Below, one piece after another: positions 4 through 57,766 of a stretch of 64,000 nucleotides of DNA (position 1 is the stretch's first letter; each line of letters begins with the position of its first letter). Both the position numbers and the translations under genes were made by a program. A model generated the notes under the pieces. It had not been told where the DNA came from and did not search any database. It was given only the letters and a program-made list of their open reading frames with translations. The stretch comes from Podarcis muralis (taxonomy: Eukaryota): NCBI RefSeq assembly GCF_964188315.1, contig NC_135667.1, positions 21,204,001 to 21,268,000 of the forward strand. Direction: 5' to 3'.

Positions 4-1695
4 GTGGCCACGGAGCACCATTTGGACCCCAGGGAAACAGGCAGTAATCTTAGTCTGGGTCTGGCCTGGTCCCCCATCAAGTTGACCCCCTTAAAAAACC
101 TTTTAGACCACTACCCCAACAGGACTGCAGCAGTGTACTTATGGGAGGGTTTCAGTACCGGTTTTAGAATCCCAGTTGCCTTTCTCCCTAATTCGGGAGA
201 CCCTCCAAACCAAAAGTCAGTGAGGGAGATGCCCGAGGTTGCCCAAAAGAAGATTAGTAAGGAAATCAAGGCAGGAAGGGTAGCCGGCCCCTTCCTAGTC
301 CCCCCAATTGAAGGCCTCCATATATCCCCGTTAGGCATAGTCCCCAAAAAAGCGCCCGGTGAGTATCGCATGATTCACAACCTTTCCTACCCTAAGGGCG
401 GGTCGGTCAATGATGCGATACCGCAGGAACTCTGCACAGTGAGATATGCCACTTTCGATCAAGCCGTACAGCTCATACGCAAGTTCGGTAAGGGGGCGCT
501 GCTGGCAAAATGTGACATTGAGTCAGCCTTTAGACTCCTGCCAGTTCATCCGGAAGATTTCCGGTGGCTTGGCTTCAAATTTGATGGGGCGTATTTTGTA
601 GACAAGGCAATGCCCATGGGCTGCTCGGTAGCCTGCGCAGCCTTCGAGGCATTCAGCACCTTCCTGGACTGGGCACTCCGCTTCAAAACTGGCGCGGAGG
701 GCGTGTCGCATTACCTGGACGACTTTATCCTCGTGGAGGATAGCAGGCCCAAATGCGCAGAGCTCCTTGAAGCATTCACATCGCTAGCGGGAGAATTGGG
801 GGTGCCGCTAGCCGCCGATAAAACGGAGGGCCCGGCAACGACAATGGTGTACTTAGGTATTGAGCTGGACACTGTCGCTCAAACCTCAAAACTTCCCAGG
901 GAAAAACTCACTGCACTTGGTGATCTCATTAGGCAACTACTCCCCCTAAGAAAAGTTACACTCAGGCAAATCCAGTCACTGTTAGGACACTTAAATTTTG
1001 CTTGCCGTGTGGTTTCCCCTGGCCGCCCATTCTGCGGCCGCCTTGCGAAGTTGTCAGCAGGACTGCGTTCCCCTCATCATAGGGTTCGGCTATCCAAGGA
1101 AGTGAAGGCTGACCTGGAAGTCTGGTTGGAGTTCTTGCAGAACTATAACGGTATTTCCATGTGGCAGGACAACCTTGCGCTGCAGGTCGACTTCCAGGTC
1201 CATTCGGATGCTTCCGGCTCCCTGGGGTTTGGTGTTTACTTTAGGGGCCAATGGTGTGCCCAGCGCTGGCCCGCCGCCTGGCAAGGGGGTCCCATCACGA
1301 GAGACTTAACCTTCCTTGAATTCTTCCCGATTGTAGTGGCGGTGCACTTGTGGCCTGAAACATTTAGTAATCATAGGGTGTGCTTCCACACCGACAACCA
1401 GGCCGTAGTGGCGGTACTTTCCAGGCAGGTCGCACGGTCACCAAGGGTAGGGGGCCTCCTGCGTTCTTTCGTTCTCAGGTGCTTAGAGCTCAACATACAC
1501 TTCTCAGCAAAATTTGTCCCTGGTGTAAATAATGACATTGCGGATGCTTTATCTCGCTTTCAGATGGACCGCTTCCGCTCGTTGGCACCGGATGCAGAGC
1601 TGCTGCCTCAGCCATTCCCGGAACATCTGTGGAAGCTCGGGGACCAGAGGCGTGGGGACCTGAGTCCTGGGAGCCAGAAGTCATTCAGGGAGTAA
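4..1695 (+). CDS. Reverse transcriptase-RNase H of Ngaro/DIRS element (probably 5'-incomplete)
   Basis: LGIVPKK..YRMIHNLS, LAKCDIESAFRLLP, MPMGCS, HYLDDF (RT); VHSDAS, LEFFPI, FHTDNQAVV, NDIADALSR (RNase H). No stops in 563 codons. Confidence 0.92.
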   Translation: MATEHHLDPRETGSNLSLGLAWSPIKLTPLKNLLDHYPNRTAAVYLWEGFSTGFRIPVAFLPNSGDPPNQKSVREMPEVAQKKISKEIKAGRVAGPFLVPPIEGLHISPLGIVPKKAPGEYRMIHNLSYPKGGSVNDAIPQELCTVRYATFDQAVQLIRKFGKGALLAKCDIESAFRLLPVHPEDFRWLGFKFDGAYFVDKAMPMGCSVACAAFEAFSTFLDWALRFKTGAEGVSHYLDDFILVEDSRPKCAELLEAFTSLAGELGVPLAADKTEGPATTMVYLGIELDTVAQTSKLPREKLTALGDLIRQLLPLRKVTLRQIQSLLGHLNFACRVVSPGRPFCGRLAKLSAGLRSPHHRVRLSKEVKADLEVWLEFLQNYNGISMWQDNLALQVDFQVHSDASGSLGFGVYFRGQWCAQRWPAAWQGGPITRDLTFLEFFPIVVAVHLWPETFSNHRVCFHTDNQAVVAVLSRQVARSPRVGGLLRSFVLRCLELNIHFSAKFVPGVNNDIADALSRFQMDRFRSLAPDAELLPQPFPEHLWKLGDQRRGDLSPGSQKSFRE

Positions 1696-2573
1696 TGGCC
1701 TCGGTGGCACCTTCCACTTTGAGATCGTATAAGAAGGCTTGGTCGGATTTTTTAAAATTCCGCAACAAAACCTGCGCCATCAGAAACAATGCCCCTCCCG
1801 TCAAACCTGAGGTGCTAGCTTACCTAGTTTACCTGAGACGCTTGGGCCGCGCCCCTAGAACCCTCAACCTTCAAGCCGCGGCAATTTCGTTCTTTTGCAA
1901 GGCGGTATTTTCCACCGATCCTTGTGACGATTTTGTTATACGAAGGACGCTAGAGGGTTGGCGTAGGCTACAGCCCCCAAGCCATGATATGGGGAGGCCG
2001 ATAACATTCGACATCCTCTCTCAGATCCATAAAAGATTGCGAACAGTATGCTGGTCTAGATATGAGGCAAGATTATTTTCAGCAGCTTACTCCATTGCCT
2101 TTTTTGGAGCCCTGCGTGTGGGGGAGTTAGTTTACGAAGCTGGTCAGCACGGTTTCTCCCGGGGCTTGCTGTTAAGTGACGTTACCCTGTCACGGGAGGA
2201 CCTGGTGGTACGGATACGCAGCTCTAAAACAGACCAGTATGGGAGGGGGGCTCTGGTTCAGCTTATGGCCACCGATAGCCCTGGTCCATGTCCAGTTAAA
2301 GACACAAGGCGCTTTTTATCCATGAGGGTCAATTCGGCAGGGCCTCTGTTGATACACGCAGATGGTTTACCTTTGACTCGTCACCAGTTCACTCGGGTCA
2401 TGCGCCTAGCACTGGCAGCATGTGGCATCCCCGCAGCAGATTTTGCTTCACACTCTTTCAGGATAGGAGCAGCCACCACGGCAATGCACCTGGGGCTTAC
2501 AGCTGAGAGGATCAGGGACGTAGGGCGCTGGAAATCTGACGCGTACAAACGCTACTTGAGAAAAAACTTGTGA
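1629..2573 (+). CDS. Tyrosine recombinase (integrase) of Ngaro/DIRS element
   Basis: FFGALRVGEL, IRSSKTDQ, HSFRIGAAT, GRWKSDAYKRY: R-K-H-x-x-R-W-Y catalytic set. The true start is likely the ATG at 1695. Confidence 0.92.
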   Translation: MEARGPEAWGPESWEPEVIQGVMASVAPSTLRSYKKAWSDFLKFRNKTCAIRNNAPPVKPEVLAYLVYLRRLGRAPRTLNLQAAAISFFCKAVFSTDPCDDFVIRRTLEGWRRLQPPSHDMGRPITFDILSQIHKRLRTVCWSRYEARLFSAAYSIAFFGALRVGELVYEAGQHGFSRGLLLSDVTLSREDLVVRIRSSKTDQYGRGALVQLMATDSPGPCPVKDTRRFLSMRVNSAGPLLIHADGLPLTRHQFTRVMRLALAACGIPAADFASHSFRIGAATTAMHLGLTAERIRDVGRWKSDAYKRYLRKNL

Positions 2574-5603: not shown

Positions 5604-6132
5604 TTATATGGAGAGCAGCCCGTTGCCGAAACACGCAGCCGAGCAGAAGATGCCCATTTCCACCTGGATGTCTGGGCTCGGCACCTGCAGGAGGGGCGAA
5701 GGCGGGGAGCGTTAGAGAGCACAGAGAGGCGCGAAGGGGCGAAGGAGGGACCCACGTCCGGAGCCCCCGCCCAACGGGGAGGGAGAGAGACTCACCCTGG
5801 AGTTGACGGGGTCCGCGAGTAGGTTCTGGGCGGGAAGGGCGCTCGGGTTGTCGAGGGCGCTGCCGAATAAGTTCAGGTTGATCCAGATTATCCTGGAGAT
5901 CTGCTCGCTCAAGAAGAGGGCTCTACGGGAGGAGGGGGAGAAGAAGGTCAGCTTGCGGGAAACGAGAGTAAAGAGGAGAAGGGCCGGGCCATGGCCTCGC
6001 CATCGGGAGAGGGTACTGCCCGACGGGGCGGGCTTACCTGGGCACAGCCTGGGCGCCGATGTCTGCGGAACGGGACGGGATCTCGGCCCAAACGGGCTGC
6101 ACGTGGCTCTGGTTGACTCCGCTCAGCGCCAT
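5604..6132 (-). CDS. Alpha-globin-derived 3-exon gene G1 (exons 6132-6038, 5922-5796, 5684-5604), 100 aa: MALSGVNQSHVQPVWAEIPSRSADIGAQAVPR/ALFLSEQISRIIWINLNLFGSALDNPSALPAQNLLADPVNSR/VPSPDIQVEMGIFCSAACFGNGLLSI
   Basis: GT-AG introns in phase 2 and phase 0; exon-1 CDS 95 nt; TGATAAAA at 6184-6177; AATAAA at 5513-5508; ungapped similarity to alpha-globin exon 1 and to LSDLHAHKLRVDPVNFK. Confidence 0.8.
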
Positions 6133-14255: not shown

Positions 14256-17200
14256 TGTGGGAATGTTCTGGGGTGCAGGAGAGGATATATTGACTAATTA
14301 TATCCTAATCCAACTTGTGCTAACAAGTTCCCAAAATATCAGCAGAGTTTATAAACATTCCCCTTTTGGTGCGCAACGGTAACGTGTGCACAGGTTCGCT
14401 AGAACCTCTATAATAATTACCCTGGTAATTTCCCCTTTAGTTCCCTCTTAAAATACAAGACACGACACAGTCTTCATAAAAGTATAAAAGAGTTTACTCA
14501 CGTTCTGTTCACAATGTTATCCCAGAAGGCACAGCTTAAAAAGGTTACATACATTTAGGATCTATCTTATAGCAAGATAGGCCTTATCTCCTCTCTTGGC
14601 TGGGAGCCAAGAGAGCATCCTTAGATGTTTCCTCATCGAAGGAAAATGGCAGAGAGAGAGATGGCTGCCTGCCCTGTGCTTTTTGTCATTACCTGCACAG
14701 GTGAGGCCACACCCACCTCTGGTCACATGTGGAGGAAATCCGTCCCCAGGAAGTTTACCTGCTTGCTGGACAGACATCCCCCCATGTTCTAACATGTACA
14801 CTCTAGGAATGTTGTCATTGACTGCTCCTGTGTTTACATCCCACATACCCCTTCTCAGGCAATACAACATATACAAAATATAAACAACTTTATTCAACCA
14901 CCCAGAGTCCCAGCTTGACACGTAGATTCTGGAAACTCTCTCTTGGTAGGGGTTTCGTCAGGATGTCAGCAGTCATCTCTTGGGTGCTGCAGTAGGATAG
15001 TTCCACAAGTCCATCCTGGATCATCTGGCGTATGTAGTGGTACTTAACCCCAATGTGTTTTGTTCTGGCCAGGAACTTCTCACTCTGCGTCAGCTTCAGG
15101 CAACTTTGATTGTCCTCCAGCAAGCTGACAGGCCCTTTCCTCACCAACCCAAAGTCCTTTATGAGTTGATCAAGCCAGGCGATCTCTCTGCAGGCTTCTG
15201 TTGCTGCAACGTATTCTGATTCTGTGGAAGATAATGCTACACAGCTCTGTTTATAACTGCCCCATGAAATAGGTCCATCACCAAACATGAAAACATGACC
15301 ACTTGTTGATTTATAGTCAGCATTATCCCCAGCCCAATCAGCATCAGTATACCCAATCAACTTAGGGTCTCTGACGGCTGGTAACCTTAATTTACAATTC
15401 ATGGTACCCTTCAAATATCGCACCACCCTCTTTACACCTGCCCAATCATGCTCAGTGGGAGAATTCACTTTTCTGCTAAGAATCCCCACAGCATTAGCTA
15501 AGTCAGGTCTACATGTGGTAACTAAATACAAAAGTTTACCAATCGCCGACCTGTAGTCATTGTTGTCTGGCAACTGCTTCGAATCCTGCTGATTCTTCAG
15601 GAAGTCAGTAGCCATCGGTGTAGCAACTGGATGTGCGTCTTGCATCTGCATGTGCTCAACTAGCTCGTGGATCTTCTGTCTTTGGCTAAGAAGAAATGAT
15701 CCGTCCTCTTCTCTTTCCACCTGGATCCCGAGGTAGTACTGGACATCTCCTAGCTCCTTGACCTCCACCTCTTTACTAAGGTGCTTTACTATCTGTGTAT
15801 AGTCTCTCTCACTTGCTGTGGCAATAATCAGGTCATCAACGAATGCTAGGATATATGAGAATTGTCCATTATTTGACTTACTGTACAAGCACTTGTCAGC
15901 GTCGCCTTGCTTGTACCCAAGTTGCGTCAGCATTTTATGCAACTTCTGGTTCCAGGCTCTGGCAGCCTGTTTAAGTCCATAAAGTCCTTTCTGTAGTTTG
16001 CACACTAGATGTGCCTCATGTGGTTTTACAAAACCTTTGGGCTGTTTCATATAAATTTCTTCAGAAATCTGCCCATGTAGAAAAGCGGTAGCAATGTCAA
16101 TGTGTTTCACCCTCATTTTCTTGGAGGCTGCAATGCTTAAAAGCATTCTTACGCTGCTGTACCTCACAGTTGGTGCAAAAACTTCATCGTAGTCTTCACC
16201 AAAACGCTGTGAAAATCCCTGTGCTACAAGTCTAGCTTTGTAGCGCTGCACTTCTCCTTCTGACCCCTTCTTAACCTTGAAAACCCATTTACTGCCAATG
16301 GCCTTCTTACCGGGAGGCAGCTCAGTGAGTGTCCAGGTCTTGTTCTGATGCAGTGCATCCATCTCCTCCTGCGCGGCCTTCCTCCAGAGACTGGCTTCAG
16401 CAGCTGGCATCTCCTGTATCTCTTCCCAAGTGGAAGGTTCCTGTGGAAACGCCGACCCTGCAAAGTAGGACAGCCGTAATGGTGGGACACCTTTGTTGGT
16501 TCTGGATGAGATCCTGACCTCTGGTTCTGCGACCGCATCAGCTTCCTCATCCTCCTCCAACGCAGGCATGTCCCCATCTGAGTCCTCATCTTCGTCTCTG
16601 GTGCCGCCAGGGTTCTGGTCCTCTGCGTCTTCTGGTGCGTCGCCTGTAGGGGGCACTGTAACACTCGAAGGCAGATTATTACTTTGTGGGGTCTCAAAAG
16701 GGAAATATACAAACTCTTGAGTCCTTTCTGACTCATCTGAAGAATCCACAACAGTGTTCTTAGTGTCTACTTTTCCATATTCATCAAAATAAACCGCATG
16801 GTATGCATTTGTCTTACCAGTTTGTAAGTCCATAATTCTGTATCCTTTGCCTCCAGAAGCATATCCCACAAGGATACCTGCTTTTGCCCTGGAGTCAAGC
16901 TTGTGTCTGTGTTCTTTGGGCACGTGGAAGTAACACGGACTTCCAAACACACGTATGTGTGACAGATTGGGAGCTTTCCCATGCCAAAGTTCAAATGGTG
17001 TGCGCTCTGCACCTTTAGTTGGCAGTCTATTCTGCAAATAGACTGACGTGTATACTCCTTCGGCCCACAGCTTTTGTGGCAAACGTGCATCCTTTAGCAT
17101 GCACCTTGTCATGTCCATAATGGACCTAAACTTTCTCTCAGCTATGGCATTCTGCTGTGGTGTGTAAGGAATTGTGGTTACGTGTGCAATTCCTTCTCTG

Positions 17201-19778
17201 GCCAGGAGAGCCTGCACTTCATTTGAGCAGTACTCACCTCCATTGTCACTCATTAACACAGCTGGAGCTCTCTGGAATTTGTTCTTGACCATGGCAATGT
17301 ATTCCTGGAGCTTGTCCACTGTCTCACTCTTCTCTTTGAGGAAATATACAACACAAAATCTTGAAAAATCATCCAGAAATATTAAAATGTATCTATTCTT
17401 TCCCAGTGAGGGAACATTCATGGGTCCACATATGTCAGTGTGCACTATGTCAAGCACTTTGTTGCTTCTTTGTTCTGCACAACGTGGAAATGAAGGTTTT
17501 ATAGCCTTCTCAGTAATACAGCTTATGCACTTTGCTGGAGCTTTGTTGCTCTGCTTTACCTGCAAACCTCTTACAAGATTTCTTTTCTGTAGATCCAGAA
17601 TGGCGCTGGTGTCCCTGTGTCCTAGCCTTCTGTGCCATAAGTCCAGATCTGCTTCATCCTTCTGGCTGGAATGTGCCACTTTTGCAGACTGGTTCTCTGA
17701 AAGATCAAGCTCATATACACCATTTATTAGCTTTGCTTGAGCAAACACTTTGCCACTTCTAGTCACTTTACATTCTCCATTTCCAAATGTGACCTGGAAA
17801 CCTTTCTTGTCCAAAGTGGACACGCTGATTAAATTGCAACTCAGCTCTGGAACATACAAAACTCTAGAGATTGTGTTCTCAATGCATTCATTGTTTATAT
17901 TGCATTTCAGGCTCATGGAACCTGCACCTTTTGCTTTAACAATGTTGCCATCTGCAATCTCAATTTCAGATCCTTCTTCATCATTTATTTCATTAATCTC
18001 ATTAAAATAGTCCTTTTTATATGAAAAATGCGAACTGGCACCTGAATCTAAAATCCATTTGTTACGTTTATTTTCACGATTCTGGACAGCTAAGTTCCTT
18101 TCTTGCAGTAACCATGTGCATTCACATTTCCCCTTCTTTTCCCCTTTTGGCTGAAAGGGGTGGGGTTTCTTGGCTTTAGGAGCTCTGCAGTTCTTTGCAA
18201 TGTGTCCTTCTTTGTTACAATTGAAGCAAATCACTTTCTTAGGCATCTCTTTGGACTTTGTACATTGCCTAGATGCATAACTGCTGTCCTTGCTTCTAGC
18301 ATTCCTCACTGGAGATTCAGCTCTATCTCTGCATTCTTCTTTTAAATAACCAATCAAGTCTTTAAAAGTCAGACCTTGTCTATGATCCATCAAACTTACA
18401 AATGTGCTAAAGCGTGGTCCAAGTGATGATAACAAAAATGCTATCTTTGTATCCTCATCAAAAGCTTTGGGAGTCAGATCAATTCTTTGAATAATCTCAG
18501 TAAACTTGTTGATGTGCTCTGTGAATTCCTCTTTTGAATTCATCCTCAATCTGGTTAATTTACACACCAAGTTTCTGAAGCTGTTTATGCTAGATTCTCC
18601 ATACACGCGTTCAATATCTCTTAAGATTTGAGATGCATCATCTGTACTATTTATTAATGATAGCTGCTCATCACGAAGTCCACTCAAAATTATGTGTCTA
18701 GCTTCGCTGTTCATGCGTTTCCAAGCACTTATCTTGGCTAAATCTCCCTCAGACGATCCCGTAGGTTGAGGGTTTAAAGCTTCCAAAATATGCTTATAAT
18801 CTAAACATGCTATCAAGCGCTGCTTCCAGTGTATGAAATTGTATTCATTCAGCACAGGCATTCCAAGCTTTGCATCACTATCAAAAGCTGCTCTAGCCAT
18901 CTTAAAATCCAAAATTTGAAAATTCTTCAAAATTTCAAAATTTCTCAAAATTTTAAAATCAAAATCTCAAAAATCTCAAAATGCAAAACAATTCTTCACT
19001 GCCTTGGGTCACTGTGAACTCTGAGGGAAGGGGGGGGGGTTGCTTAATCCCCACTGCACAATGGAACAAAGGACCATGTGCTTACCAGGAAGTTAACTCA
19101 GAAAAAATACTACTCAACTCAAAATCACAATCCAACGCAATCCTTCAAAAATACGCAGAAATATGCAATACTGGGCCCACTAACCCTTTGTGGGAATGTT
19201 CTGGGGTGCAGGAGAGGATATATTGACTAATTATATCCTAATCCAACTTGTGCTAACAAGTTCCCAAAATATCAGCAGAGTTTATAAACATTCCCCTTTT
19301 GGTGCGCAACGGTAACGTGTGCACAGGTTCGCTAGAACCTCTATAATAATTACCCTGGTAATTTCCCCTTTAGTTCCCTCTTAAAATACAAGACACGACA
19401 CAGTCTTCATAAAAGTATAAAAGAGTTTACTCACGTTCTGTTCACAATGTTATCCCAGAAGGCACAGCTTAAAAAGGTTACATACATTTAGGATCTATCT
19501 TATAGCAAGATAGGCCTTATCTCCTCTCTTGGCTGGGAGCCAAGAGAGCATCCTTAGATGTTTCCTCATCGAAGGAAAATGGCAGAGAGAGAGATGGCTG
19601 CCTGCCCTGTGCTTTTTGTCATTACCTGCACAGGTGAGGCCACACCCACCTCTGGTCACATGTGGAGGAAATCCGTCCCCAGGAAGTTTACCTGCTTGCT
19701 GGACAGACATCCCCCCATGTTCTAACATGTACACTCTAGGAATGTTGTCATTGACTGCTCCTGTGTTTACATCCCACA
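14256..19778 (-). mobile_element. Full-length Ty1/copia LTR retrotransposon
   Basis: LTRs 14256-14845 and 19189-19778 (590 bp each, TG..CA, no difference seen by eye); TSD CCTGC (14251-14255, 19779-19783); PBS-like GGTTAGTGGGCCCAG next to the 5' LTR; PPT GAGAAGGGGTA next to the 3' LTR. Confidence 0.97.
14890..18900 (-). CDS. Copia gag-pol polyprotein (single ORF, about 1336 aa from the ATG at 18900)
   Basis: CFNCNKEGHIAKNC knuckle, WILDSGASSH protease, LWHRRLGH and TDICGP/SDNGGEY/ERK integrase, KARLVAQG and FVDDLI RT, TDADWAG/EDNQ/ADILTK RNase H, in PR-IN-RT-RH order. Confidence 0.96.
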   Translation of the reverse strand: MARAAFDSDAKLGMPVLNEYNFIHWKQRLIACLDYKHILEALNPQPTGSSEGDLAKISAWKRMNSEARHIILSGLRDEQLSLINSTDDASQILRDIERVYGESSINSFRNLVCKLTRLRMNSKEEFTEHINKFTEIIQRIDLTPKAFDEDTKIAFLLSSLGPRFSTFVSLMDHRQGLTFKDLIGYLKEECRDRAESPVRNARSKDSSYASRQCTKSKEMPKKVICFNCNKEGHIAKNCRAPKAKKPHPFQPKGEKKGKCECTWLLQERNLAVQNRENKRNKWILDSGASSHFSYKKDYFNEINEINDEEGSEIEIADGNIVKAKGAGSMSLKCNINNECIENTISRVLYVPELSCNLISVSTLDKKGFQVTFGNGECKVTRSGKVFAQAKLINGVYELDLSENQSAKVAHSSQKDEADLDLWHRRLGHRDTSAILDLQKRNLVRGLQVKQSNKAPAKCISCITEKAIKPSFPRCAEQRSNKVLDIVHTDICGPMNVPSLGKNRYILIFLDDFSRFCVVYFLKEKSETVDKLQEYIAMVKNKFQRAPAVLMSDNGGEYCSNEVQALLAREGIAHVTTIPYTPQQNAIAERKFRSIMDMTRCMLKDARLPQKLWAEGVYTSVYLQNRLPTKGAERTPFELWHGKAPNLSHIRVFGSPCYFHVPKEHRHKLDSRAKAGILVGYASGGKGYRIMDLQTGKTNAYHAVYFDEYGKVDTKNTVVDSSDESERTQEFVYFPFETPQSNNLPSSVTVPPTGDAPEDAEDQNPGGTRDEDEDSDGDMPALEEDEEADAVAEPEVRISSRTNKGVPPLRLSYFAGSAFPQEPSTWEEIQEMPAAEASLWRKAAQEEMDALHQNKTWTLTELPPGKKAIGSKWVFKVKKGSEGEVQRYKARLVAQGFSQRFGEDYDEVFAPTVRYSSVRMLLSIAASKKMRVKHIDIATAFLHGQISEEIYMKQPKGFVKPHEAHLVCKLQKGLYGLKQAARAWNQKLHKMLTQLGYKQGDADKCLYSKSNNGQFSYILAFVDDLIIATASERDYTQIVKHLSKEVEVKELGDVQYYLGIQVEREEDGSFLLSQRQKIHELVEHMQMQDAHPVATPMATDFLKNQQDSKQLPDNNDYRSAIGKLLYLVTTCRPDLANAVGILSRKVNSPTEHDWAGVKRVVRYLKGTMNCKLRLPAVRDPKLIGYTDADWAGDNADYKSTSGHVFMFGDGPISWGSYKQSCVALSSTESEYVAATEACREIAWLDQLIKDFGLVRKGPVSLLEDNQSCLKLTQSEKFLARTKHIGVKYHYIRQMIQDGLVELSYCSTQEMTADILTKPLPRESFQNLRVKLGLWVVE

Positions 19779-25400: not shown

Positions 25401-25622
25401 CCGGGGGTTAGACTAGATGACTTTGAGTGTCTTTCCCAACTCCATTATTTCCCCGCACCCCCCACCCCGTTCAGCCTAAATAGACTCCGGGAGAGCAGTG
25501 AGAGCTAAAAGCAGGTTTATTGGGGGTGGGGGTGGGGGTGGGGGTGGGGAGGGACGTGGTCGAGGCTGCCACGTCCAGGCGGCACTTCTGCGGAGGACGC
25601 CGGCTGCTTCTCTCGCCTAGCG

Positions 25623-26159
25623 TTATATGGAGAACCCCCCGTCGCCGAAATACGCAGCCGAGCAGAAGATGCCCATTTCCAGCTGGATGTCTAGGCTCGG
25701 CAGCTGTGGGAGCGGCGAAGGGGGGGAGCGTTAGAGAGGACAGAGAGGCGCGAAGGAGGGACCCACGTCTGGGGCCCCCGCCCGACGGGGAGGGAGACAG
25801 ACTCACCCTGGAGTTCACGGGGTCCGCGAGCAGGTTCTGGGCGGGCAGGGCGCTCAGGTTGCTGGGGTCGCCCTCGCCGTCATCCATAACGAGGTGGCAG
25901 CCTAACTGGAAGAGGATAATCTTCAGTTCCTCCTCTGAGGGGCCGGTGCTACGGGAGGAGGGGGAGAAGAAGGTCAGCTTGCGGGAAACGAGAGTAAAGA
26001 GGAGAAGGGCCGGGCCATGGCCTCGCCATCGGCAGAGGGTCCCTGCCCGACGGGGCGGGCTTACCTGGGCACAGCCCGGGCGCCGATATCTGCGGAACGG
26101 GACGGGATCTCGGCCCAAACGGGCTGCACGTGGCTCTGGTTGACTCCGCTCAGCGCCAT
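25623..26159 (-). CDS. Alpha-globin-derived gene G2 (exons 26159-26065, 25948-25807, 25703-25623), 105 aa: MALSGVNQSHVQPVWAEIPSRSADIGARAVPS/TGPSEEELKIILFQLGCHLVMDDGEGDPSNLSALPAQNLLADPVNSR/LPSLDIQLEMGIFCSAAYFGDGGFSI
   Basis: Same splice signals as G1, open spliced frame, AATAAA at 25521-25516. Confidence 0.8.
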
Positions 26160-28265
26160 CCTGCCAGCTCAACCTCTTGGTGCCGTCGGAGTAGGGGCAG
26201 CCCTTTTATCACCGCCCGCCCTGCCCCCCGGGTGGCGTCTCCCTCGGCCTCTGCGAGCGCTTCCTTCCCTCCCTCGGCCTCGGCAAGGATCCGGGACGGG
26301 GCGCACGAGCCCTGGCAAGTGAGCATCCTCCTCGCAATTCCCGCTGCCTGCTGCCAGGCGGACACCGTCGAGCATCTTCGCTGGACGCTCCCTGGGCGAT
26401 GATGACTCGGTAGTCCTGACACCCCCCCACCGCCCTGCGAGGTCGGCCAGTCAGTCTTCTTCCCCCATTGCTGCGCACGGCAGAGGGGCACGAGGGCAGG
26501 TCCTCGCCTGCGGGGGTGGAAGCTACGACCCAAATCGAACCAAATGGGTCGCTCCTTTGAACGCCAGGCCAATCGCCGGCAGGACTGCAGGTGCGGGAGA
26601 GAGGAAGGATCAGTCCATCCAGCTGAATGGGGGCATTTGGCCCTCGGCGTCCTCCCCCCAAGGGACTCACAGGAAGCTTGGCTGGCAAGAAAGAAGGGGG
26701 GCGGGTCCTTGTGGGGATCAGGACTGGCGAAGCAGCAGGAAAGCAGAGACCGTTCTCCCCATTCCAAGTCACCCAAAAGGGGAACATATTGAGGGTGGGG
26801 CTGAGAATCTAGTTCAGTTTACTTAAAAATACGCAGGACTGAAGAGTTCATGGAAGGCCTAACAGGTTTATGGAAATCAACAAAGGAGCAGATTTCAAGC
26901 AACAACTTGGAACATGAAAAGAAAGAACAACGCTTATCCAATCTATAGTTCAGCCCATCTACCGTAATTAGTGAGGTTAAATATATGTGGGAAGCAGACT
27001 GGATTATTAGAAATAATTTTAGGTTACTAAACTGCAGCCCAGTTCCAAACTGACCATTTCCTACCCACCCTGAAATGAGAAAGAAGAATTTTGTTTAATT
27101 GCTTATTTGTTAATTAGGATTCATGGGGAAATGGTCCAGTTTGGAACTGAGCCCCAGTTCAGTAGCCTAGAAATTACTATGTGTTGAGAGTGCAAAGTTG
27201 GAGGCAGCAGGGAGCCCTCAAGACTGTCCTGGAAGGAACTCCAGGGGATGAGCAACCAGGGATGATAAATTGACACCTTCGCCACAGACTGCAAGCAATG
27301 GTTCATTTCCTGTGTTCACCAAAGTGGGTGGTCATTATAGGTGTCCAAGGTGGGTCACCTACACATACATTCCTATCCACACCAAACCAAATGGTTATTA
27401 GAGGTCATTATGCAGGCCATTATGCAGGGACCTGCCCATGTATACCTATCCAAACACAGACATACACTTTTGGTGCACACTTATGAGTGGCAGAGTGGGT
27501 GTAGGCCACATCTATGAGAAGGTGGAAGTGTGAGTGGCAGCAGAATTCCCCGGTTCAGCTAACCCAGAAGCTAAAAGAGGAGGATCGTCTGTGACCTTGC
27601 AGGCCATTTCTCCCCTTGTCCACCAAAGGCTGAGCATGGAAGCCAGGCAAGAAGACACCTGCAGAAGAGTCTCTTGGGAGGGCAGCTGTGGGGGTAATGT
27701 GGGGCTGGTGCTCTATGCAGGCTGGCCATACTGGGGGAGGGAAGGAGGAGGAGAAGGCGTGAGCCCTTTGGGGCATCACAATTTTGCATGACACCCCCCC
27801 CCCAAGAAGACAGGATGTCCCAGACTGTTGACGGGTATGTGCCAGCCACAGACCCTCTAGGTGAGTTTTGCAGACTACCAATTGGGAACCGCTGATCTAC
27901 AGTATTCCAAGTGTTTTTGCACCACAGATTTGTGAATGGCATTCTGGGAGCCACAGTCTTGTTTTTAAATGCATGTTCAAGTGACCCCCACCCAGCATGG
28001 AATGGGCCTTTTTCACAGCTGCAGAACACAGGGTTGGCCTTTTCCTCCAGCTCTCCACTACCATCTTAAGGTCTCGATCCAGATTGGCCACTGCCAGTTC
28101 AGACCCAGGAATATATATGTGTGGAGTTAAGATATGTCTTTTTGCATCACAGAATCATAGAGTTGGAAGGGATCCCGAGGCTCACCAAGCCCAACCCCCA
28201 GCAAGGAAGGAATCTCAGCTGAGGAATCCCAGACAGATGGCCAGCCAACCTCTGCTTTTAAAGTC

Positions 28266-30244: not shown

Positions 30245-32583
30245 GGGGATGGGGGTAGGACAAGGTTTTGAAAATGGTATAGGTGCAATTTATTCAGAAC
30301 AAAAGGCAAAATTAATTGTGAATAATGTGATGACAGAAGAGTTTAAGATTGAAAAAGGGACACGACAAGGTTGCCCAATTTCTCCATTGCTTTTTATATC
30401 GGTCCTAGAGGTTTTGCTAAATATGATTAGAAAGGACCAAGAGGTTAAAAGTATACAGGTGGGAGCTAAACAGTATAAATTGAAAGCATTTGCTGATGAT
30501 TTAGTATTGACCTTACAGGAGCCAGAACCTAGTACTAAAAGGGTATTGAAACTGATTCAAGAATTTGGACAGGTTGCAGGTTTTAAGTTGAATAAGATGA
30601 AAACCAAGGTTCTAGAGAAAAATTTAACTATGAATGAGAGAGAGAGGTTTCAGGAGGAGACAGGACTAACATTGGTTAAAAAAGTGAAATATTTAGGGGT
30701 TAACATGACTGCTAAAAATGTGAACCTATTTAAGGATAATTATGAAAAATGTTGGACTGAAGTGAAAAAGGATTTAGAAGTATGGACAAATTTGAAGCTA
30801 TCATTGTTAGGCCGAATTGCTATGATAAAAATGAATGTGCTGCCAAGGATGTTATTTTTGTTCCAAACATTGCAAATATTGGATAAGATGGATTGTTTCA
30901 AGAAGTGGCAGAAGGATATTTCTAGATTTGTTTGGCAGGGCAAGAAGCCTCAAATAAAATTTAAGATATTAACGGATGCTAAAGAAAGAGGTGGATTTGC
31001 CCTGCCAGACCTTAAACTTTATTATGAATCAGCTGCTTTTTGTTGGCTGAGAGAATGGCTGCTTCTTGAAAATACTGAAGTGTTGGACTTAGAAGGTTTT
31101 AACAATGTATTCGGATGGCATGCATATTTGTGGTATGATAAGGTAAAAGCACATAAAGCATTTAAAAATCATATTGTCAGAAAAGCATTGTTTAATGTTT
31201 GGATAAGATATAAAGATTTGTTAGGGAAAAAAACCCCAAGATGGTTGTCACCAATGGAAGCAAAGGGACAGAAAAAACTCAATATGGAGGCCAAATGGCC
31301 GAAATATTGGGAAATTCTGGAACAAGATGGAGAGAGAATAAAATTGCAGAGCTTTGAAAAATTGAAAAACAAAGTGCGAGATTGGCTCCATTACTATCAA
31401 ATAATGGAGGCATACAAATTGGATAAAAAAGTTGGTTTCCAGGTGGAAAAATCAAAATTGGAAACAGAATTGTTAGATCCAAAAAACTAAGAATTTGTCA
31501 AGAATGTATAACTTGCTGTTGAAATGGAACACTCAGGATGAAACGGTGAAATCAGCTATGATTAAATGGGCACAAGATGTTGGACATAACATAATGATGG
31601 CTGACTGGGAACAGTTATGGACCACAGGTATGAAGTTCACGGCATGTAATGCTTTAAGAGAAAATTTAATGAAAATGATTTATAGGTGGTACATGACACC
31701 AGTTAAGCTTCAAAAAATCTACCATTTGCCCGATAATAAATGTTGGAAATGTAATGAGACTGAAGGTAAATTCTTTCACCTTTGGTGGACATGCCCAAGG
31801 ATTAAGGCATTCTGGGAGATGATTTATAATGAAATGAAGAAGGTATTTAAATATACCTTCCTGAAGAAACCAGAGGCCTTTCTCCTGGGCATGGTCGGCC
31901 AATTGGTGTTAAAGAAGAATAGAACTTTTTTTATGTATGCAACAACAGCAGCAAGAATACTCATCGCGAAATATTGGAAGACACAAGATTTACCCACCAG
32001 GGAAGAATGGCAGATGAAGTTGATGGACTATATGGAACTGGCGGAAATGACTGGCAGAATCCGAGACCAGGGAGAAGAGTCGGTGGAAGAAGACTGGAAA
32101 AAGTTTAAAGACTATTTACAGAAATACTGCAAAATTAATGAATGTTGGAATGAAGTTATATGTTGGAATGAAGTTATATGGCTTTAGTAGAAATGTTATA
32201 AGGAATTAAGTATAAATAGATCATTAGAGCATTAAAGGGAAAAATAAGGTTAGAATGTGTTAAGACAATTATAGGATAGAAACTAGAGGAAGATGGAAAG
32301 GAATTGCTGAAACAATCAATAGAAGTGGAATACAAAAAGGGAGGTGTGAGGAGGTCGTGGAAATAAGGGAAAGAAGGATAAAATATTGAAATTGGACTGT
32401 GTTTTAAATGGTTTTTGTTTTGTTTTGTTAGTTGTATGTTAGTGTTTTGTAGTTTTATTTATTATTATTATTGTTGTTGTTGTTGTTGTTGTATTGTATT
32501 ATTGTATGTTTTTTCTTTTTTTGGTTTTTTGTAGTGTTGTGTTCAATTTGTTGGAAAACTAATAAATATTATCATATAAAAAA
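30245..32583 (+). mobile_element. 5'-truncated L1-clade LINE (ORF2 RT to C-terminus, 3' UTR, A tail)
   Basis: KGTRQGCPISPLLF, AFADD, YLGV, CWKC..HLWWTC; reading frame broken at about 31490; AATAAA then an A-rich tail at about 32560-32583. Confidence 0.9.
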
Positions 32584-34793: not shown

Positions 34794-35342
34794 ATGGCGC
34801 TGAGCGGAATCAACCAGAGCCACGTGCAGCCCGTTTGGGCCGAGATCCCGTCCCGTTCCGCAGACATCGGCGCCCGGGCTGTGCCCAGGTAAGCCCGCCC
34901 CGTCGGGCAGGGACCCTCTCCCGATGGCGAGGCCATGGCCCGACACATCTCCTCTTTATTGTCGTAAGCTGACCTTCTTCTCCCCCTCCTCCCGTAGAAT
35001 CGTCTCCTTGGGGGAGTACGTCTCCAAGTTATTGTGCAGGATCAACACGGGCTCATATGCCCGCGCCCTGGAGGAAGGCGAGGGCGACCGCAGAAACCTG
35101 AGCGTCCTGCCCGCCCAGAACCTGCTGGCGGACCCCGTCAACTCCAGGGTGAGTCTGTCTCCCTCCCCGTCGGGCGGGGGCTCCAGACGTGGGTCCCTCC
35201 TTCGCCCCTTCGCCCCTTCGCGCCGCTCCGTCCTCTCTAACGCTCCCCGCCTTCGCCTCTCCCACAGCTGCCGAACCAAGACACCGAGGAGGAAATGGAC
35301 GTCTTCAGCGAGGCTGTGCTCATCATCAACGCGCTGCTCTAA
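34794..35342 (+). CDS. Alpha-globin-derived gene G3 (exons 34794-34888, 34998-35148, 35268-35342), 106 aa: MALSGINQSHVQPVWAEIPSRSADIGARAVPR/IVSLGEYVSKLLCRINTGSYARALEEGEGDRRNLSVLPAQNLLADPVNSR/LPNQDTEEEMDVFSEAVLIINALL
   Basis: TGATAAAA 34742-34749; GTAAG..CTGAC..TAG and GTGAG..CAG introns; TAA followed in frame by TAC CGC TAG (Y-R-stop); AATAAA 35435-35440. Confidence 0.82.
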
Positions 35343-36512: not shown

Positions 36513-37065
36513 TTATATGGAGAACACCCCATCGCCGAAGCACGCAGCCGAGCTGAAGATGCCCATTTCCACCTGGATGTCTGGGCTCGGCACCTGCAGG
36601 AGGGGCGAAGCGGGGAGCGTTAGAGAGGACGGAGCGGCGCGAAGGGGCGAAGGAGGGACCCACGTCTGGAGCCCCCGCCCGACGGGGAGGGAGACAGACT
36701 CACCCTGGAGTTGACGGGGTCCGCGAGCAGGTTCTGGGCGGGCAGGGGGCTCGGGTTGCTGCGGTTGCCCTCGCCTTCCTCCAGGTCGCGTAAGTATGAG
36801 TCCAGGTCGATACAGGTGAATACCTCGAGGATGTACTCCTCTAAAAGGCCGTTTCTACGGGAGGAGTGGGAGAAGAAGGTCAGCTTGCGGGAAACGAGAG
36901 TAAAGAGGAGAAGGGCCGGGCCATGGCCTCGCCATCGGCAGAGGGTCCCTGGCCGACGGGGCGGGCTTACCTGGGCACAGCCTGGACGCCGATGTCTGCG
37001 GAACGGGACGGGATCTCGCCCCAAACGGGCTGCACGTGGCTCTGGTTGACTCCGCTCAGCGCCAT
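36513..37065 (-). CDS. Alpha-globin-derived gene G4 (exons 37065-36971, 36854-36704, 36593-36513), 108 aa: MALSGVNQSHVQPVWGEIPSRSADIGVQAVPR/NGLLEEYILEVFTCIDLDSYLRDLEEGEGNRSNPSPLPAQNLLADPVNSR/VPSPDIQVEMGIFSSAACFGDGVFSI
   Basis: Same splice signals, open spliced frame, AATAAA at 36424-36419. Confidence 0.8.
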
Positions 37066-41793: not shown

Positions 41794-42340
41794 TTATATG
41801 GAGCGAAAACCGTTGACGATGCACGCAGCCGAGCAGAAGATGCCCATTTCCAGCTGGATGTCTGGGTACGGCACCTGCAGGAGGGGCGAAGGCGGGGAGC
41901 GTTAGAGAGGACGGAGCGGCGCGAAGGGGCGAAGGAGGGACCCACGTCTGGAGCCCCCGCCCGACGGGGAGAGAGAGAGACTCACCCTGGAGTTGACGGG
42001 GTCCGCCAGCAGGTTCTGGGCGGGCAGGGCGCTCAGGTTTCTGCGGTCGCCCTCGCCTTCCTCCAGGGCGCGGGCATATGAGCCCATGTTGATCCTGCAC
42101 AATAACTTGGAGACGTACTCCCCCAAGGTGACGATTCTACGGGAGGAGGGGGAGAAGAAGGTCAGCTTACGACAATAAAGAGGAGATGTGTCGGGCCATG
42201 GCCTCGCCATCGGGAGAGGGTCCCTGCCCGACGGGGCGGGCTTACCTGATCACAGCCCGGGCGCCGATGTCTGCGGAACGGGACGGGATCTCGGCCCAAA
42301 CGGGCTGCACGTGGCTCTGGTTGACTCCGCTCAGCGCCAT
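41794..42340 (-). CDS. Alpha-globin-derived gene G5 (exons 42340-42246, 42136-41986, 41874-41794), 108 aa: MALSGVNQSHVQPVWAEIPSRSADIGARAVIR/IVTLGEYVSKLLCRINMGSYARALEEGEGDRRNLSALPAQNLLADPVNSR/VPYPDIQLEMGIFCSAACIVNGFRSI
   Basis: Same splice signals, open spliced frame, AATAAA at 41708-41703. Confidence 0.8.
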
Positions 42341-45802: not shown

Positions 45803-46660
45803 TGTTGTGCAAACCACAGGGGTGTGGGGCCTCCCCCCAAGCCTTGTGGCCCCTCCCACTTCTGTGTAGGCAGCGCTAGTTGAGCTCAGTAAGCAACCTC
45901 CCTCTTGGCTGAAGAGGTAGAAAAAACAACCTGGGCAGCTTGGCAGGTCCCAAGCCCAGACCAGGAGGCTCTTGGTTCAAGGCCCCTTCCCTCAGGCCAT
46001 GAGCCCGCTGCTTGGAAGGGCCCATCATTGCAAGGAAATCTGCAGCTCCTCCTAACTGACTGATATTCTAAGGACCAAATGAGAGTAGCAGCACTTCACC
46101 TCTGGCGACTGAGCAACCTCTGATATCATTCCTTCTTCTCTTCAGCCAGTTTTGGCCAAACCACAGTGTGTTTCTTTTCTGATGCAGGTTCTTCTGACAC
46201 AGAGGGGACATGGGACTCCCTGGCAGACGTGGGAAGCGAGACCCTTCTGCAGGGGCAGGTGGGCAGGGTACTAGACTGCTCTGATCTACCAGAGACATCC
46301 AAATCCTTACAGGGGAAGCTGACACCTTTAGAATTATGCAGCACAAAGGTTTTACTTTTGTCATGAACTTGCTAGGCAGTCTCAGGCAAGCCACTCTCCA
46401 TTTCAGCTCCTTTCCCCCATGTTCAACATGAGCAAAATAATGTTCGCATTCCTGCATTGTGGGGGTTGGACTGGATGCTCTTATTCAGTTAATTAGCCTC
46501 TTTTGTCCACCATTTTGTCTCCATTGCAGTGGTTCTATGAGGTAGCAAGATGGCTGCCATTGCCACCTCCTATTTCCATAATAATTAATTTTTGTACCTC
46601 TTCCAACTGACTAGGTTGTTCCAGCTACTCTGGGTGACTTACTAAAGAATTACTGGGCGG
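45803..46660 (+). repeat. Duplicon module A, copy 5
   Basis: Matches 3776-4635. Confidence 0.8.
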
Positions 46661-46662
46661 AG

Positions 46663-46747
46663 GCCGGGTGCCGATGTCTGTGGAACGGGACGGGATCTCG
46701 GCCCAAACGGGCTGCACACGGCTCTGGTTCGCTCAGCTCAGCGCCAT
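46663..46747 (-). pseudogene. Globin-derived exon-1 fragment G6
   Basis: ATGGCGCTGAGC..GTGCAGCCCGTTTGGGCCGAGATCCCGTCCCG..GACATCGGCACC; no splice donor or later exons; a Penelope fragment abuts the ATG. Confidence 0.75.
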
Positions 46748-47104
46748 CCAATGTCTTTGTTCAGACCAAACTTAAAACCATGGAGAGACCTGGTCTGAAC
46801 AAAGACATTGGATTCTTATCCCATTATACACGACAAAGCCATTTTTCACCTTCTCACCCCTTGCTTTTTCCTGTAAGACCTATTGCAGTCGTTAAGAGTC
46901 GTCAACAGGCTCATCACAGCTATCTGCCAATCACCCATTCCCACCACCCTTCTGAGTAATACCCCTCCCCACCTTCTCACTATATAGAAGGATCTGGCAA
47001 CTTCTGTTTCAGTGTATCTGAAGAAGTGTGCATGCACACAAAAGCTCATACCAAGAACTAACTTAGTTGGTCTTTAAGGTGCTACTGGAAGGAATTTTTT
47101 TTGT
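46748..47104 (+). mobile_element. Penelope-like element 3' fragment with an inverted 5' segment
   Basis: PGLNKDIGFLSHY (C-terminus typical of PLE GIY-YIG ORFs); 21-bp inversion ccaatgtctttgttcagacca / tggtctgaacaaagacattgg. Confidence 0.7.
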
Positions 47105-50212: not shown

Positions 50213-50737
50213 ATGGCGCTGAGCGGAGTCAACCAGAGCCACGTGCAGCCCGTTTGGGTCGAGATCCCGTCCCGTTCCGCAGACATCGGCGCCCAGGTTA
50301 TGCCCATGTAAGCCCGCCCCGTCGGGCAGGGACCCTCTCCCGGTGGCGAGGCCATGGCCCGGCCCTTCTCCTCTTTACTCTCGTTTCCCGCAAGCTGACC
50401 TTCTTTTCCCCCTCCTCCCGTAGAGGTCACCTCTTGAGCGAGACTATCTCCAGGTTAATCTGCAACATCGACCTGAACACATTCATCCGCGCCCAGAGCC
50501 TCCCCAGCAACCTGAGCGCCCTGCCCGCCCAGAACCTGCTCGCGGACCCCGTCAACTCCAGGGTGAGTCTCTCTCCCTCCCCGTCACGTGGTTCCCTCCT
50601 TCGCGCAGCTCCGTGCTCTTTAACGCTCCCCGCCTTCGCCCCTCTAGCAGCTGCCGAACCAAGACACCCAGGAGGAAATGGACATCTTCACCAAGGCTGC
50701 GCTCCTCGTCAACGTGCTGCTCTCCATATACCTCTAG
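50213..50737 (+). CDS. Alpha-globin-derived gene G7 (exons 50213-50307, 50424-50562, 50651-50737), 106 aa: MALSGVNQSHVQPVWVEIPSRSADIGAQVMPI/GHLLSETISRLICNIDLNTFIRAQSLPSNLSALPAQNLLADPVNSR/LPNQDTQEEMDIFTKAALLVNVLLSIYL
   Basis: GATAAAAG at 50161; canonical splice sites; ends TCC ATA TAC CTC TAG at the ancestral stop; AATAAA 50817-50822. Confidence 0.8.
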
Positions 50738-55531: not shown

Positions 55532-56549
55532 ATAATTCCCAATTCTGTGGAAATTGTAGCCTAGTGAAGGGTCCCCTAGCACCTCTCACACCCTTATCAA
55601 ACTACAGGATTATTTGGGGGAAAGCCATGACTGTTCAAGTGGTATGAGTGCTCTAGATATATAGCCAGGATGTGGCCTTTGTTTAGCTATGCACAGAACT
55701 CAGGATAGTTATCTCTTCTTTATCTGCTACACCAAGCAGTGGAAAGAAAGGCATGAGGATTGGGAGTGGTAAAGACTCTGAGATGATGCTTACCCTGACT
55801 TGCTACTTCTGCTTGGGTGCCATGATCTGGCACATGATCACAGCTCTCCAAAACAGGATGTCCCAGGCAGCTGATGGGTAGGTTCCACGGACGCCCTGGG
55901 TGGGTCACACAGAACCCCTGAGGTCCACGGACCACTGACTGGGAACCACTGGTTTAGAGAAAAGGCAAGGAAAGGATGCCATGATTGGAATCTATAACAT
56001 GATGCCAGGTGTGGGACAAGTTTTTCTCCCTCTCTCGTCACACTATTACTTGTGTAATTCTAGTAGGTGGAATTGCTTGCAGAAATGTGCACCTTAAGCA
56101 AACAGTTGAACAAAAACACACATCTAAGGAGAAATGCACATTGGAAAAGCTGGCATATTTTGTGAGGGCTTTAAAACAAAATCACCAGCTGATGTACGAG
56201 TGTGGCGAACTGAACTCAGGATTGTAAAAAGGGGAAACTGAGAAATATCGGAATTGTCCCATCTTTCCACATACAGCCATTCTTTACCTTCCGGAACAAA
56301 CTCCATCCTCTCTTGTGACCATCAGCTCTTGGGGTCATAGTTTCAGAGTTCTTGCCTACAGTGGCTGCTGCTGTCAGTGCTTGGCAGCCTTGGAAGGTTT
56401 TAAGCCGAGGATGGATGGCCACCTGCCAGGGACGACTTGGTTCAGATTCCTGCATTGCAGGGGGTTGGACTAGATGACTCTGAGTGTCCCTCCCAACTCT
56501 ACAATTCTGTGATTTGAGTTCCACTTTTAAATATAGAGGTCTGGATGGA

Positions 56550-57130: not shown

Positions 57131-57337
57131 CAATTCTGTGATTTCTCCGCACCCCAGTCCAGCCTAAGGAGATTCGGGGAGAGCAGTGAGAGCTAAAAGC
57201 AGGTTTATTGGGGGCGGGGGGGGGGAGGTCGAGTCTGCCACGTCCAGGCGGCACTTCTGCGGAGGGTGCGGCTGCTTCTCTGGCCTAAGGTCAGCATGAC
57301 GGGGCTGCGGCGGCTGTCGATGGAGACGCTGGCGCTG

Positions 57338-57766
57338 TTATCTAGGAGCCCGGACGTTGACGTCCATTATCACCTGGATGTCTGGCCTCGGCAGCTGCGG
57401 GAGGGGCGAAGGCGGGGAGCGTTAGACGGAGAGGACGGAGCGGCGCGAAGGGGTGAAGGAGGGACCCATGTCCGGAGCCCCCGCCCGACGGGGAGGGAGA
57501 GAGACTCACCCTGGAGTAGAAGGGGTCCGCAAGCGGGTTCCCGCTGTCGATGGCGCGGACGACGCTGGAGGCGATGGCCGCTGCGTACAGCCTGCAGGAG
57601 ACGAGAGTAAAGAGGAGAAGGGTCGGGCTATGGCCTCGCCATCGGGAAAGGGTCTCTGCCGGACGGGGCGGGCTTACCTGACCCCTGTTCTGATGTTTTC
57701 AGAAAGGGACGGGATCTCGGCCCAAACGGGCTGCACGTGGCTCTGGCTGGCTCCGCTCAGCGCCAT
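57338..57766 (-). CDS. Divergent alpha-globin-derived gene G8 (exons 57766-57678, 57591-57510, 57394-57338), 75 aa: MALSGASQSHVQPVWAEIPSLSENIRTGVR/LYAAAIASSVVRAIDSGNPLADPFYSR/LPRPDIQVIMDVNVRAPR
   Basis: CATAAAAA box, canonical splice sites, AATAAA at 57209-57204. Shorter with an early stop, so it may be a pseudogene. Confidence 0.6.

Follow-up and report, generated by a model that had tools for sequence, protein, structure and literature searches.

Why should copies of one gene be nearly identical in exon 1 and in their introns, and hardly alignable over a short segment between them? The question is raised by a window of 64,000 nt, the stretch 21,204,001-21,268,000 of chromosome record OZ076966.1 of the lizard Podarcis muralis, in which self-comparison reveals seven copies of a small three-exon gene, plus one solo exon-1 relic. 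A preliminary description, made from the sequence alone, had located the variability in the 5' part of exon 2 and had proposed that selection preserves the reading frame and diversifies one surface of the protein. Our analysis centers on the copy c25k, on the minus strand, and on its relatives in P. muralis and P. lilfordi. The answer that we regard as rather probable is diversifying selection on what is left of the globin E helix (∼25 codons) in a globin-derived family that is expressed but haem-less, together with duplication of the repeat units and gene conversion.

A divergence peak in a transcribed three-exon gene

The c25k gene has three exons and a predicted product of 105 amino acids, which is the NCBI "uncharacterized protein LOC144325097" (P0003). 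The coding part of exon 1 (26065..26159, minus strand, 95 nt) starts with the ATG at 26159, ends in phase 2, as in alpha-globin, and is covered by an RNA contig. Intron 1 (25949..26064, minus strand, 116 nt) has GT..AG boundaries. Exon 2 (25948-25807, minus strand, 142 nt), flanked by an AG acceptor and a GT donor, encodes TGPSEEELKIILFQLGCHL in frame with exon 1. The core of the finding is its hypervariable 5' part (25879..25948, minus strand, 70 nt, codons 32-55, S TGPSEEELKIILFQLGCHLVMDD), which is followed by a conserved 3' part (25807..25878, minus strand, 72 nt, GEGDPSNLSALPAQNLLADPVNSR). Intron 2 (25704..25806, minus strand, 103 nt) precedes the coding part of exon 3 with the stop codon (25623..25703, minus strand, 81 nt), which encodes LPSLDIQLEMGIFCSAAYFGDGGFSI and is a remnant of the globin H helix. 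The polyadenylation signal AATAAA (25516..25521, minus strand) is the same in all copies, and a processed retrocopy described below ends just 3' of it.

The gene is transcribed and spliced. One of the Logan contigs of RNA runs joins 26065 to 25948, and a second one (word depth 494) spans all of exon 2 and the first 8 nt of exon 3; RNA contigs with loose ends at 25807 read into the start of exon 3, CTGCCGAG. Paralogues are transcribed as well, since contigs of two other RNA runs have the same flanks but carry 75 or 78 other letters where c25k has its variable part. In run X21, few raw reads are available, and their first mate lies on the plus strand, as expected for minus-strand RNA. Compared to the assembly, one RNA contig differs at 3 of the 142 exon-2 positions (1 replacement, 2 silent). 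The exact-protein look-up of P0003 returned the genome assembly only and no transcript assembly.

As for the 5' end of the transcripts, RNA contigs (26160-26400 and beyond) contain the TATA-like GATAAAAG, and one of them begins at 26219. This start coincides with the 5' end of the retrocopy, ∼65 nt before the ATG, which suggests that transcription begins near 26220, on the upstream side of this TATA-like sequence. Another, spliced RNA contig extends upstream beyond 26400. As the contigs include the apparent TATA box and extend past it, the transcription start or starts should lie upstream of it.

We aligned 13 copies and calculated pairwise distances for the eight full P. muralis copies. In the variable part, that is, the first ∼80 columns of exon 2, the mean distance is 0.354 and the maximum is 0.60. 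Means for the other parts are far lower: exon 1 has 0.039, intron 1 has 0.045, intron 2 has 0.072, and the 3' untranslated region (UTR) has 0.056. The length of the maximum likelihood tree per site is 2.24 in the variable part vs 0.17-0.31 for non-coding sequence. Along three of the 4-kb repeat units, a sliding profile stays at a background of 0-0.10 except for a single sharp peak of 0.36-0.56 on the first 70-80 nt of exon 2 and a lesser bump at exon 3. Exon 1 shows almost no variation among copies or between P. muralis and P. lilfordi. The divergence peak is confirmed as real and far beyond chance. Hence, the impression of near-identical flanks around a barely alignable 5' part of exon 2 was correct, and all seven exon-2 lengths given for the window (127, 142, 151, 151, 151, 139, and 82 nt) and the five quoted exon-2 peptides were reproduced. 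Divergence of exon 2 does not match that of the introns, exceeding it 7-13 fold.

Neither is this divergence mostly synonymous. To obtain the mutational expectation, we used 212 polarised non-coding changes of the same repeat units and compared it with parsimony counts on the tree of each region; this spectrum test was chosen because it avoids equilibrium assumptions. In the variable patch, 17 silent and 121 replacement changes were counted with 39.5 silent changes expected, yielding omega-hat of 2.86 and P(fewer silent)=3.9e-6. Replacement changes per site in the patch amount to 6.7 times the non-coding tree length, the pooled NG86 pN/pS is 1.74, and the closest cross-species pair, c5k vs Pl_P8, has 0 silent and 10 replacement differences in the patch. 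Exon 3 behaves similarly, with 6 silent and 50 replacement changes, 16.3 silent expected, omega-hat of 3.42 and P=9e-4. Exon 3 (25623-25703 and its equivalents in all copies) is thus a second fast-changing segment; its silent divergence is at the non-coding level, and in its first 15 codons there is no silent difference in any pair of copies. For exon 1, omega-hat is 1.21 (4 silent, 12 replacement, 4.6 silent expected; not significant). Amino-acid change that outpaces the surrounding DNA is the usual mark of an arms-race protein.

Codon models with F1X4 frequencies, whether GY or MG, yield omega of 2.9-3.5 for the patch (P=6e-4 to 7e-5), and MG-F3X4 yields 1.7 (P=0.10). Site models M1a and M2a were fitted to exon 2 (51 codons, 10 distinct sequences). 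Under MG-F3X4, M2a improves on M1a with 2dlnL=13.3 (P=0.0013), with omega of 3.1 for 36% of the sites; the posterior exceeds 0.8 at twelve sites, which all fall within columns 33-53.

The reading frame is preserved throughout. In the patch we count at least four indel events, of 3, 9, 12, and 21 nt; every one of these lengths is divisible by three, which is true of none of the eight intron indels in the same copies (1, 7, 8, 8, 31, 4, 1, and 1 nt; Fisher test vs the patch, P≤0.007). As had been claimed for the window, exon 2 contains no stops, and this holds for every copy of either species, although the absence of stops is weak evidence for a single copy, since shuffling also yields an open frame in 22-38% of cases and the +2 frame is itself almost open. 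All P. lilfordi copies are in frame, with neither frameshifts nor stops. The proposal that the frame is kept by selection therefore stands, based on in-frame indels and the lack of stops in 11 copies of two species. Downstream of the patch, the 3' third of exon 2 has omega of 0.14-0.6 and is constrained in that omega is significantly below one in two of five models (0.28, P=0.02; 0.11, P=7e-4); the mutation-spectrum test for this conserved part gave 7 silent and 8 replacement changes with 5.2 silent expected (omega-hat 0.60, not significant).

The loose amphipathic motif that had been noticed in exon 2 survives in part: hydrophobic columns 36, 40, 43, 44, 47, 52, and 56 are kept, as one would expect if they once formed the inner face of an E helix, but hydrophobic moments of single peptides are not significant. 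The restriction of diversity to one surface was not supported, as a helical wheel with 100 degrees per residue does not separate selected from other columns (permutation P=0.72, R=0.15). Readings of the motif as BH3-like or as a nuclear export signal were dropped by eye as non-specific.

Globin ancestry and arrangement of the copies

Sequence searches against PDB returned almost only haemoglobin alpha chains, the other hit being one unrelated chance match at E 1.5. With the protein of the retrocopy (P0009) the E-value to haemoglobin alpha was 1.5e-8, with the family profile it was 2.6e-5, and with c36k it was 0.004. Among Atlas feature matches, which we treat as a lead only, 94 of 100 were globins. 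Exon 1 aligns to haemoglobin alpha residues 2-35, the end of exon 2 aligns to residues 73-108, and positions 37-94 of the family profile align to residues 56-113 of the chain; by these alignments, the variable segment is the rough counterpart of the globin E helix and the EF corner. The gene structure is also that of a vertebrate globin, with three exons, intron 1 after codon 31 in phase 2, and intron 2 in phase 0 after ..DPVNSR. Haemoglobin alpha (PF00042) itself has the same three exons, a 95-nt exon 1 ending in phase 2 and an exon 2 ending in phase 0 after ..DPVN-x-K/R, while being ∼141 amino acids long, compared to 101-108 in this family. The FG-corner motif DPVN and the equivalent of the A-helix W14 are retained. 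The N-terminus, MALSGVNQSHVQPVWAEIPSRS, is a polar globin A helix without a hydrophobic leader, and each protein has 0-3 cysteines, whose positions are not conserved; presumably, the product resides in the cytosol. A search for Pfam domains, including Globin PF00042, found no match for three family proteins even at E≤10.

Several parts of a working globin have been lost. The proximal F8 histidine is replaced by proline (LSALPAQ aligned to LSDLHAH), so that the conserved part of exon 2 is a remnant of the F helix and the FG corner; the region of the distal histidine (E7) falls in the hypervariable segment or is removed; and helices B-D and G are absent. The last ∼33 nt of intron 1 resemble the former start of globin exon 2, and the type-E copy as well as the retrocopy use the upstream acceptor. 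In older-looking copies (c57k and three P. lilfordi copies), the ending ..LTSKYR with its stop is still in frame behind a premature stop. Taken together, similarity and exon structure indicate that the family descends from haemoglobin alpha and is devoid of the haem pocket, its members being globin descendants and not working globins.

The retrocopy is found in P. lilfordi on another chromosome (L004:9933-10640, OX395140.1). It carries an intact open reading frame (ORF) of 98 amino acids ending in ..VLTSKYR, lacks both introns precisely, and has a poly(A) remnant after AATAAA and a short interspersed element in the 3'UTR. Like c57k, it uses the older exon-2 acceptor (RLF..), and its exon 1 is 13% diverged. 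The existence of a processed retrocopy means that an ancestral member was spliced, and implies transcription in the germ line.

Besides c25k, the window contains the copies c5k (exon 2 at 5796..5922, minus strand, 127 nt, type A), c35k (34998..35148, plus strand, 151 nt, type C; an inverted copy), c36k (36704..36854, minus strand, 151 nt), c41k (41986..42136, minus strand, 151 nt, type C), c50k (50424..50562, plus strand, 139 nt, type D), and c57k (57510..57591, minus strand, 82 nt, type E), the last one with the older upstream acceptor and without the hypervariable segment. The proteins of c36k, c41k, c25k, and c50k are NCBI "uncharacterized protein" models of P. muralis, the c36k protein being 100% identical to LOC144325310. 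The solitary exon-1 relic (46653-46749) is 89% identical, has a frame-breaking indel, and has no exon 2 or 3 nearby. P. muralis has two further copies outside the window, 7 and 11 kb ahead of it (locus L005), and the syntenic region of P. lilfordi contains four to five; hence, there are at least nine intact copies in P. muralis vs 4-5 in P. lilfordi, about twice as many. In 11 copies from the two species, no damage is seen to splice sites, start codon, or poly(A) signal.

Two pairs of positional orthologues were identified, one formed by c50k and Pl_P8, the P. lilfordi protein P0008 (49162-53318 vs L002:1-4289), and the other by c57k and the P. lilfordi copy with short exon 2 (55440-59661 vs L002:4269-7614). 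In the former pair, the flanks are 95.8% identical, and yet the exon-2 types differ, as do the exon-3 forms (derived short vs ancestral long). For comparison, unique flanks of P. muralis and P. lilfordi are 3.5-4.2% different, and repeat units within P. muralis differ by 4-5%. Exon 2 of c50k is present in an RNA contig of run X3. In this copy (50213-50430), the exon-1 donor context is CAT|GTAAGC and not CAG|GTAAGC, and both the NCBI isoforms X1 and X2 (231-232 amino acids) and the run X3 contig keep intron 1, with in-frame readthrough from an upstream ATG.

The family sits between SCAN zinc-finger genes, outside the alpha-globin cluster as it is reported for lacertids in a recent study (10.1101/2025.06.04.657811). 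Searches of 5.8 billion proteins and 1.84 billion representatives found relatives in P. muralis and P. lilfordi alone; one match to a bacterial S-layer protein was spurious. Rfam yielded no match on the whole window. Other features of the window are mobile elements: an apparently intact Ty1/copia-type long terminal repeat retrotransposon with an uninterrupted ORF of 1352 amino acids (14890-18948, minus strand; gag, zinc knuckle, integrase, RVT_2), an ORF with a reverse transcriptase of the long interspersed element type (30249-32187, plus strand), and a transposon ORF at 4-2573 (plus strand), where the reverse transcriptase is followed by a weak match to the phage-integrase N-terminal SAM-like domain (E 7e-4, 20.3 bits vs the cut-off of 27), so that this element is possibly DIRS-like.

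Selection, exchange among copies, and rival explanations

The history of the locus may be read as follows. The 4-kb units are either young or kept alike by unequal crossing-over and gene conversion, their divergence of ∼4-5% being of the same order as the species split (∼4%). Against this background, ∼25 codons at the start of exon 2 gain replacements ∼7 times faster than the adjacent non-coding DNA, with the frame and the hydrophobic positions kept. The most likely cause is diversifying positive selection on a putative binding surface of a small cytosolic protein, in which the N-terminal helix and the FG-corner remnant may serve as a constant scaffold. The types of the variable segment would predate the species split and would have been moved between copies by short conversion tracts, which could account for silent sites of exon 2 being ∼2.6 times more diverged than introns.

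The copies are indeed mosaic. In-frame deletions of 21 nt and 9 nt define patch types, and each of them is common to P. muralis and P. lilfordi copies. Nearest-neighbour copies change from segment to segment. Two copies, L5a and L5b (L005:5482-6192 vs L005:9940-10653), have the same exon-2 patch and are ∼10 replacements apart in exon 3, and the first 22 nt of the patch are common to c41k, L5a, and L5b, which diverge thereafter. Given these mosaic trans-specific types and the raised silent rate considered below, short-tract conversion or segment exchange among paralogues contributes to the pattern, and point mutation plus selection are not the whole story. Searches of the 64-kb window and of five related loci revealed no donor cassettes outside genes.

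Several observations weigh against diversifying selection, or at least against its simplest form. Under GY-F3X4 or GY-F, omega of the patch is 0.83 and not significant, and under GY-F3X4 the gain of M2a vs M1a is 3.1 (P=0.21). The codon models disagree because third codon positions of the patch are 60% C and 4% T, making the count of silent sites uncertain; overall, these positions are 83% G+C despite about 35-60% divergence. Something keeps C-ending codons in the hypervariable patch. The local non-coding spectrum consists mostly of C>T and G>A changes, unlike the C-rich third positions of the patch. Of the two site-model variants, MG-F3X4 is better than GY-F3X4 by ∼19 log-likelihood units at an equal number of parameters. 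Recombination among copies is evident and inflates the site-model tests, and the comparative tests cover 11 sequences of two species. Furthermore, silent changes accumulate at 3.2 times the non-coding rate in the patch and ∼2.6 times over exon 2, and at just the non-coding rate in exons 1 and 3; the raised rate in the patch is not predicted by amino-acid selection alone. It is partly apparent only, as by the codon table several "silent" differences are convergences on six-fold Leu or Arg codons, and the remainder is consistent with exon 2 having a deeper history. For the same reason we dropped the silent divergence at identical amino acids (0.22), which had hinted at very old lineages, much of it being Leu/Arg six-fold convergence, and replaced it by the parsimony counts. 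Structure prediction does not help either: AlphaFold2 on an alignment of eight sequences yielded an unusable model (pLDDT 54, pTM 0.20, helices at 37-52 and 83-102). Hence, of the diversifying selection proposed from the sequence, the excess of replacements (P=3.9e-6) holds, while omega above one and the site-model result (P=0.0013 under MG-F3X4) depend on the codon-frequency model.

Much of the mosaicism could also be expected if the variable segments were simply old lineages whose flanks had been homogenised except where heterology blocks conversion, so that the peak would reflect age and not continuing positive selection. The two in-frame deletions defining types common to both species, nearest neighbours that differ by segment, the positional orthologues c50k and Pl_P8 carrying different types, and the 2.6-fold excess of exon-2 silent divergence over the non-coding level are all consistent with it; moreover, the 13% divergence of exon 1 in the retrocopy indicates that the family is older than its flanks suggest. 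Still, divergence between species within a type is 4-11 times the neutral ∼4% and is mainly due to replacements, as in c5k vs Pl_P8, and the replacement-to-silent ratio is above the mutational expectation. The units are ∼95% identical across 4 kb and not just beside the exon, and many of the "silent" differences, being six-fold Leu or Arg convergences, are not old neutral changes. We consider age alone unlikely, though worth keeping in view. A local mutational process that swaps short exon segments (switching of the ASSET type, template switching, or error-prone repair), with only frame and stops filtered, would on the other hand explain the 3.2-fold rate at silent sites, the low kappa in the patch (1.2-1.4 vs 2-10 elsewhere), the very sharp borders of the patch, and omega of about 1 under GY-F3X4, and segment switching has been described for three-finger toxins (PMC2474615, PMC2711939). 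However, a codon-blind process should produce the mutational replacement-to-silent ratio, from which the observed excess departs at P=3.9e-6; types A, C, and D differ mostly by single-base changes in well-aligned codons; the searched loci, as noted, hold no donor cassettes; and the 5' border of the patch is the splice acceptor, which mutation cannot sense. The chances of such a process being the main cause seem to us small.

A third possibility is that the copies are decaying transcribed pseudogenes, that is, dead globin relics with an unconstrained patch and frames that are open by luck in GC-rich DNA. A single exon 2 is indeed stop-free in a substantial fraction of shuffles with the +2 frame almost open, there is no Pfam match, the haem histidines are lost, and omega of exon 1 is about 1. 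Yet unconstrained sequence cannot diverge 7-13 times faster than the adjoining introns, indels are always in frame in the patch and never in introns, omega of the 3' part of exon 2 is below one (significantly so in some models only), splice sites, the start codon, and the poly(A) signal are intact in the 11 copies from both species, and the transcripts are spliced. Decay is thus very improbable. Diversifying selection on the E-helix remnant, combined with unit duplication and conversion, remains our preferred explanation.

Known systems and the meaning of the family

Vertebrate globins are the textbook example of a gene family that evolves in concert and under purifying selection. The Podarcis family has been amplified to at least nine copies and has proline in place of the F8 histidine. 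A lacertid study reports no positively selected codon in canonical haemoglobin alpha (10.1101/2025.06.04.657811). In the parts available to us, this study and another survey of sauropsid globins (PMC5786229) make no mention of such genes. Our literature search found no description of a globin-derived family in Podarcis.

The peptide-binding exons of the major histocompatibility complex (MHC) have variable lineages older than species and older than the introns, are mosaic due to short conversion tracts, and have raised silent divergence. The Podarcis family shares with the MHC trans-species lineages of the variable exon, flanks that group otherwise, mosaic genealogies, and raised silent divergence inside the variable exon, although the diversity in Podarcis lies between the paralogues of an array and the proteins are unrelated. 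Conopeptide precursors, which the Podarcis family also resembles, combine a conserved N-terminal part and conserved UTRs with a hypervariable segment, in which both silent and replacement rates are raised, and have been subject to a debate on mutator vs selection. Unlike the Podarcis proteins, they are secreted cysteine-framed mollusc peptides, and their variable part is the whole mature peptide.

The pattern matches accelerated evolution in the three-finger toxin and phospholipase A2 families of snake venoms (PMC2474615, PMC2711939, PMC6062510), which, like the Podarcis family, consist of small three-exon tandem genes with introns and UTRs much more alike than short exon segments, these segments being radically different among paralogues. 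An excess of replacements marks the toxins, and also the Podarcis patch by the spectrum-based count, while omega above one there depends on the codon-frequency model. In viperid three-finger toxins the phenomenon is known as "accelerated segment switch in exons" (ASSET; PMC2474615; PMC2711939). Unlike venom toxins, the Podarcis family has neither a signal peptide nor a cysteine scaffold, is of globin ancestry, and occurs in a non-venomous lacertid. With its 4-kb unit, a target of 25 codons, and two species with different copy numbers, the locus is a compact natural experiment, and it could help to tell local hypermutation apart from gene conversion and from positive selection, as is also asked for snake toxins and conopeptides.

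Going further is speculative. Half a globin might have been re-used as a recognition scaffold, where constant remnants of the A helix and the FG corner would hold hypervariable remnants of the E and H helices as contact surfaces of an intracellular arms-race family. Such a family might act in nucleated red cells against haemogregarines, or, given the germ-line transcription implied by the retrocopy, in genetic conflict or drive. Intra-erythrocytic haemogregarines are common in Podarcis. We consider this scenario improbable, if attractive; were it true, this would be the first vertebrate haemoglobin gene to have yielded a haem-less, diversifying multigene family. Even the more modest explanation by diversifying selection, if true, would mean an unexpected fate for a haemoglobin: a lineage-specific offshoot that has discarded the haem pocket, has grown to about ten copies, and follows the evolutionary mode of toxin or immune genes.

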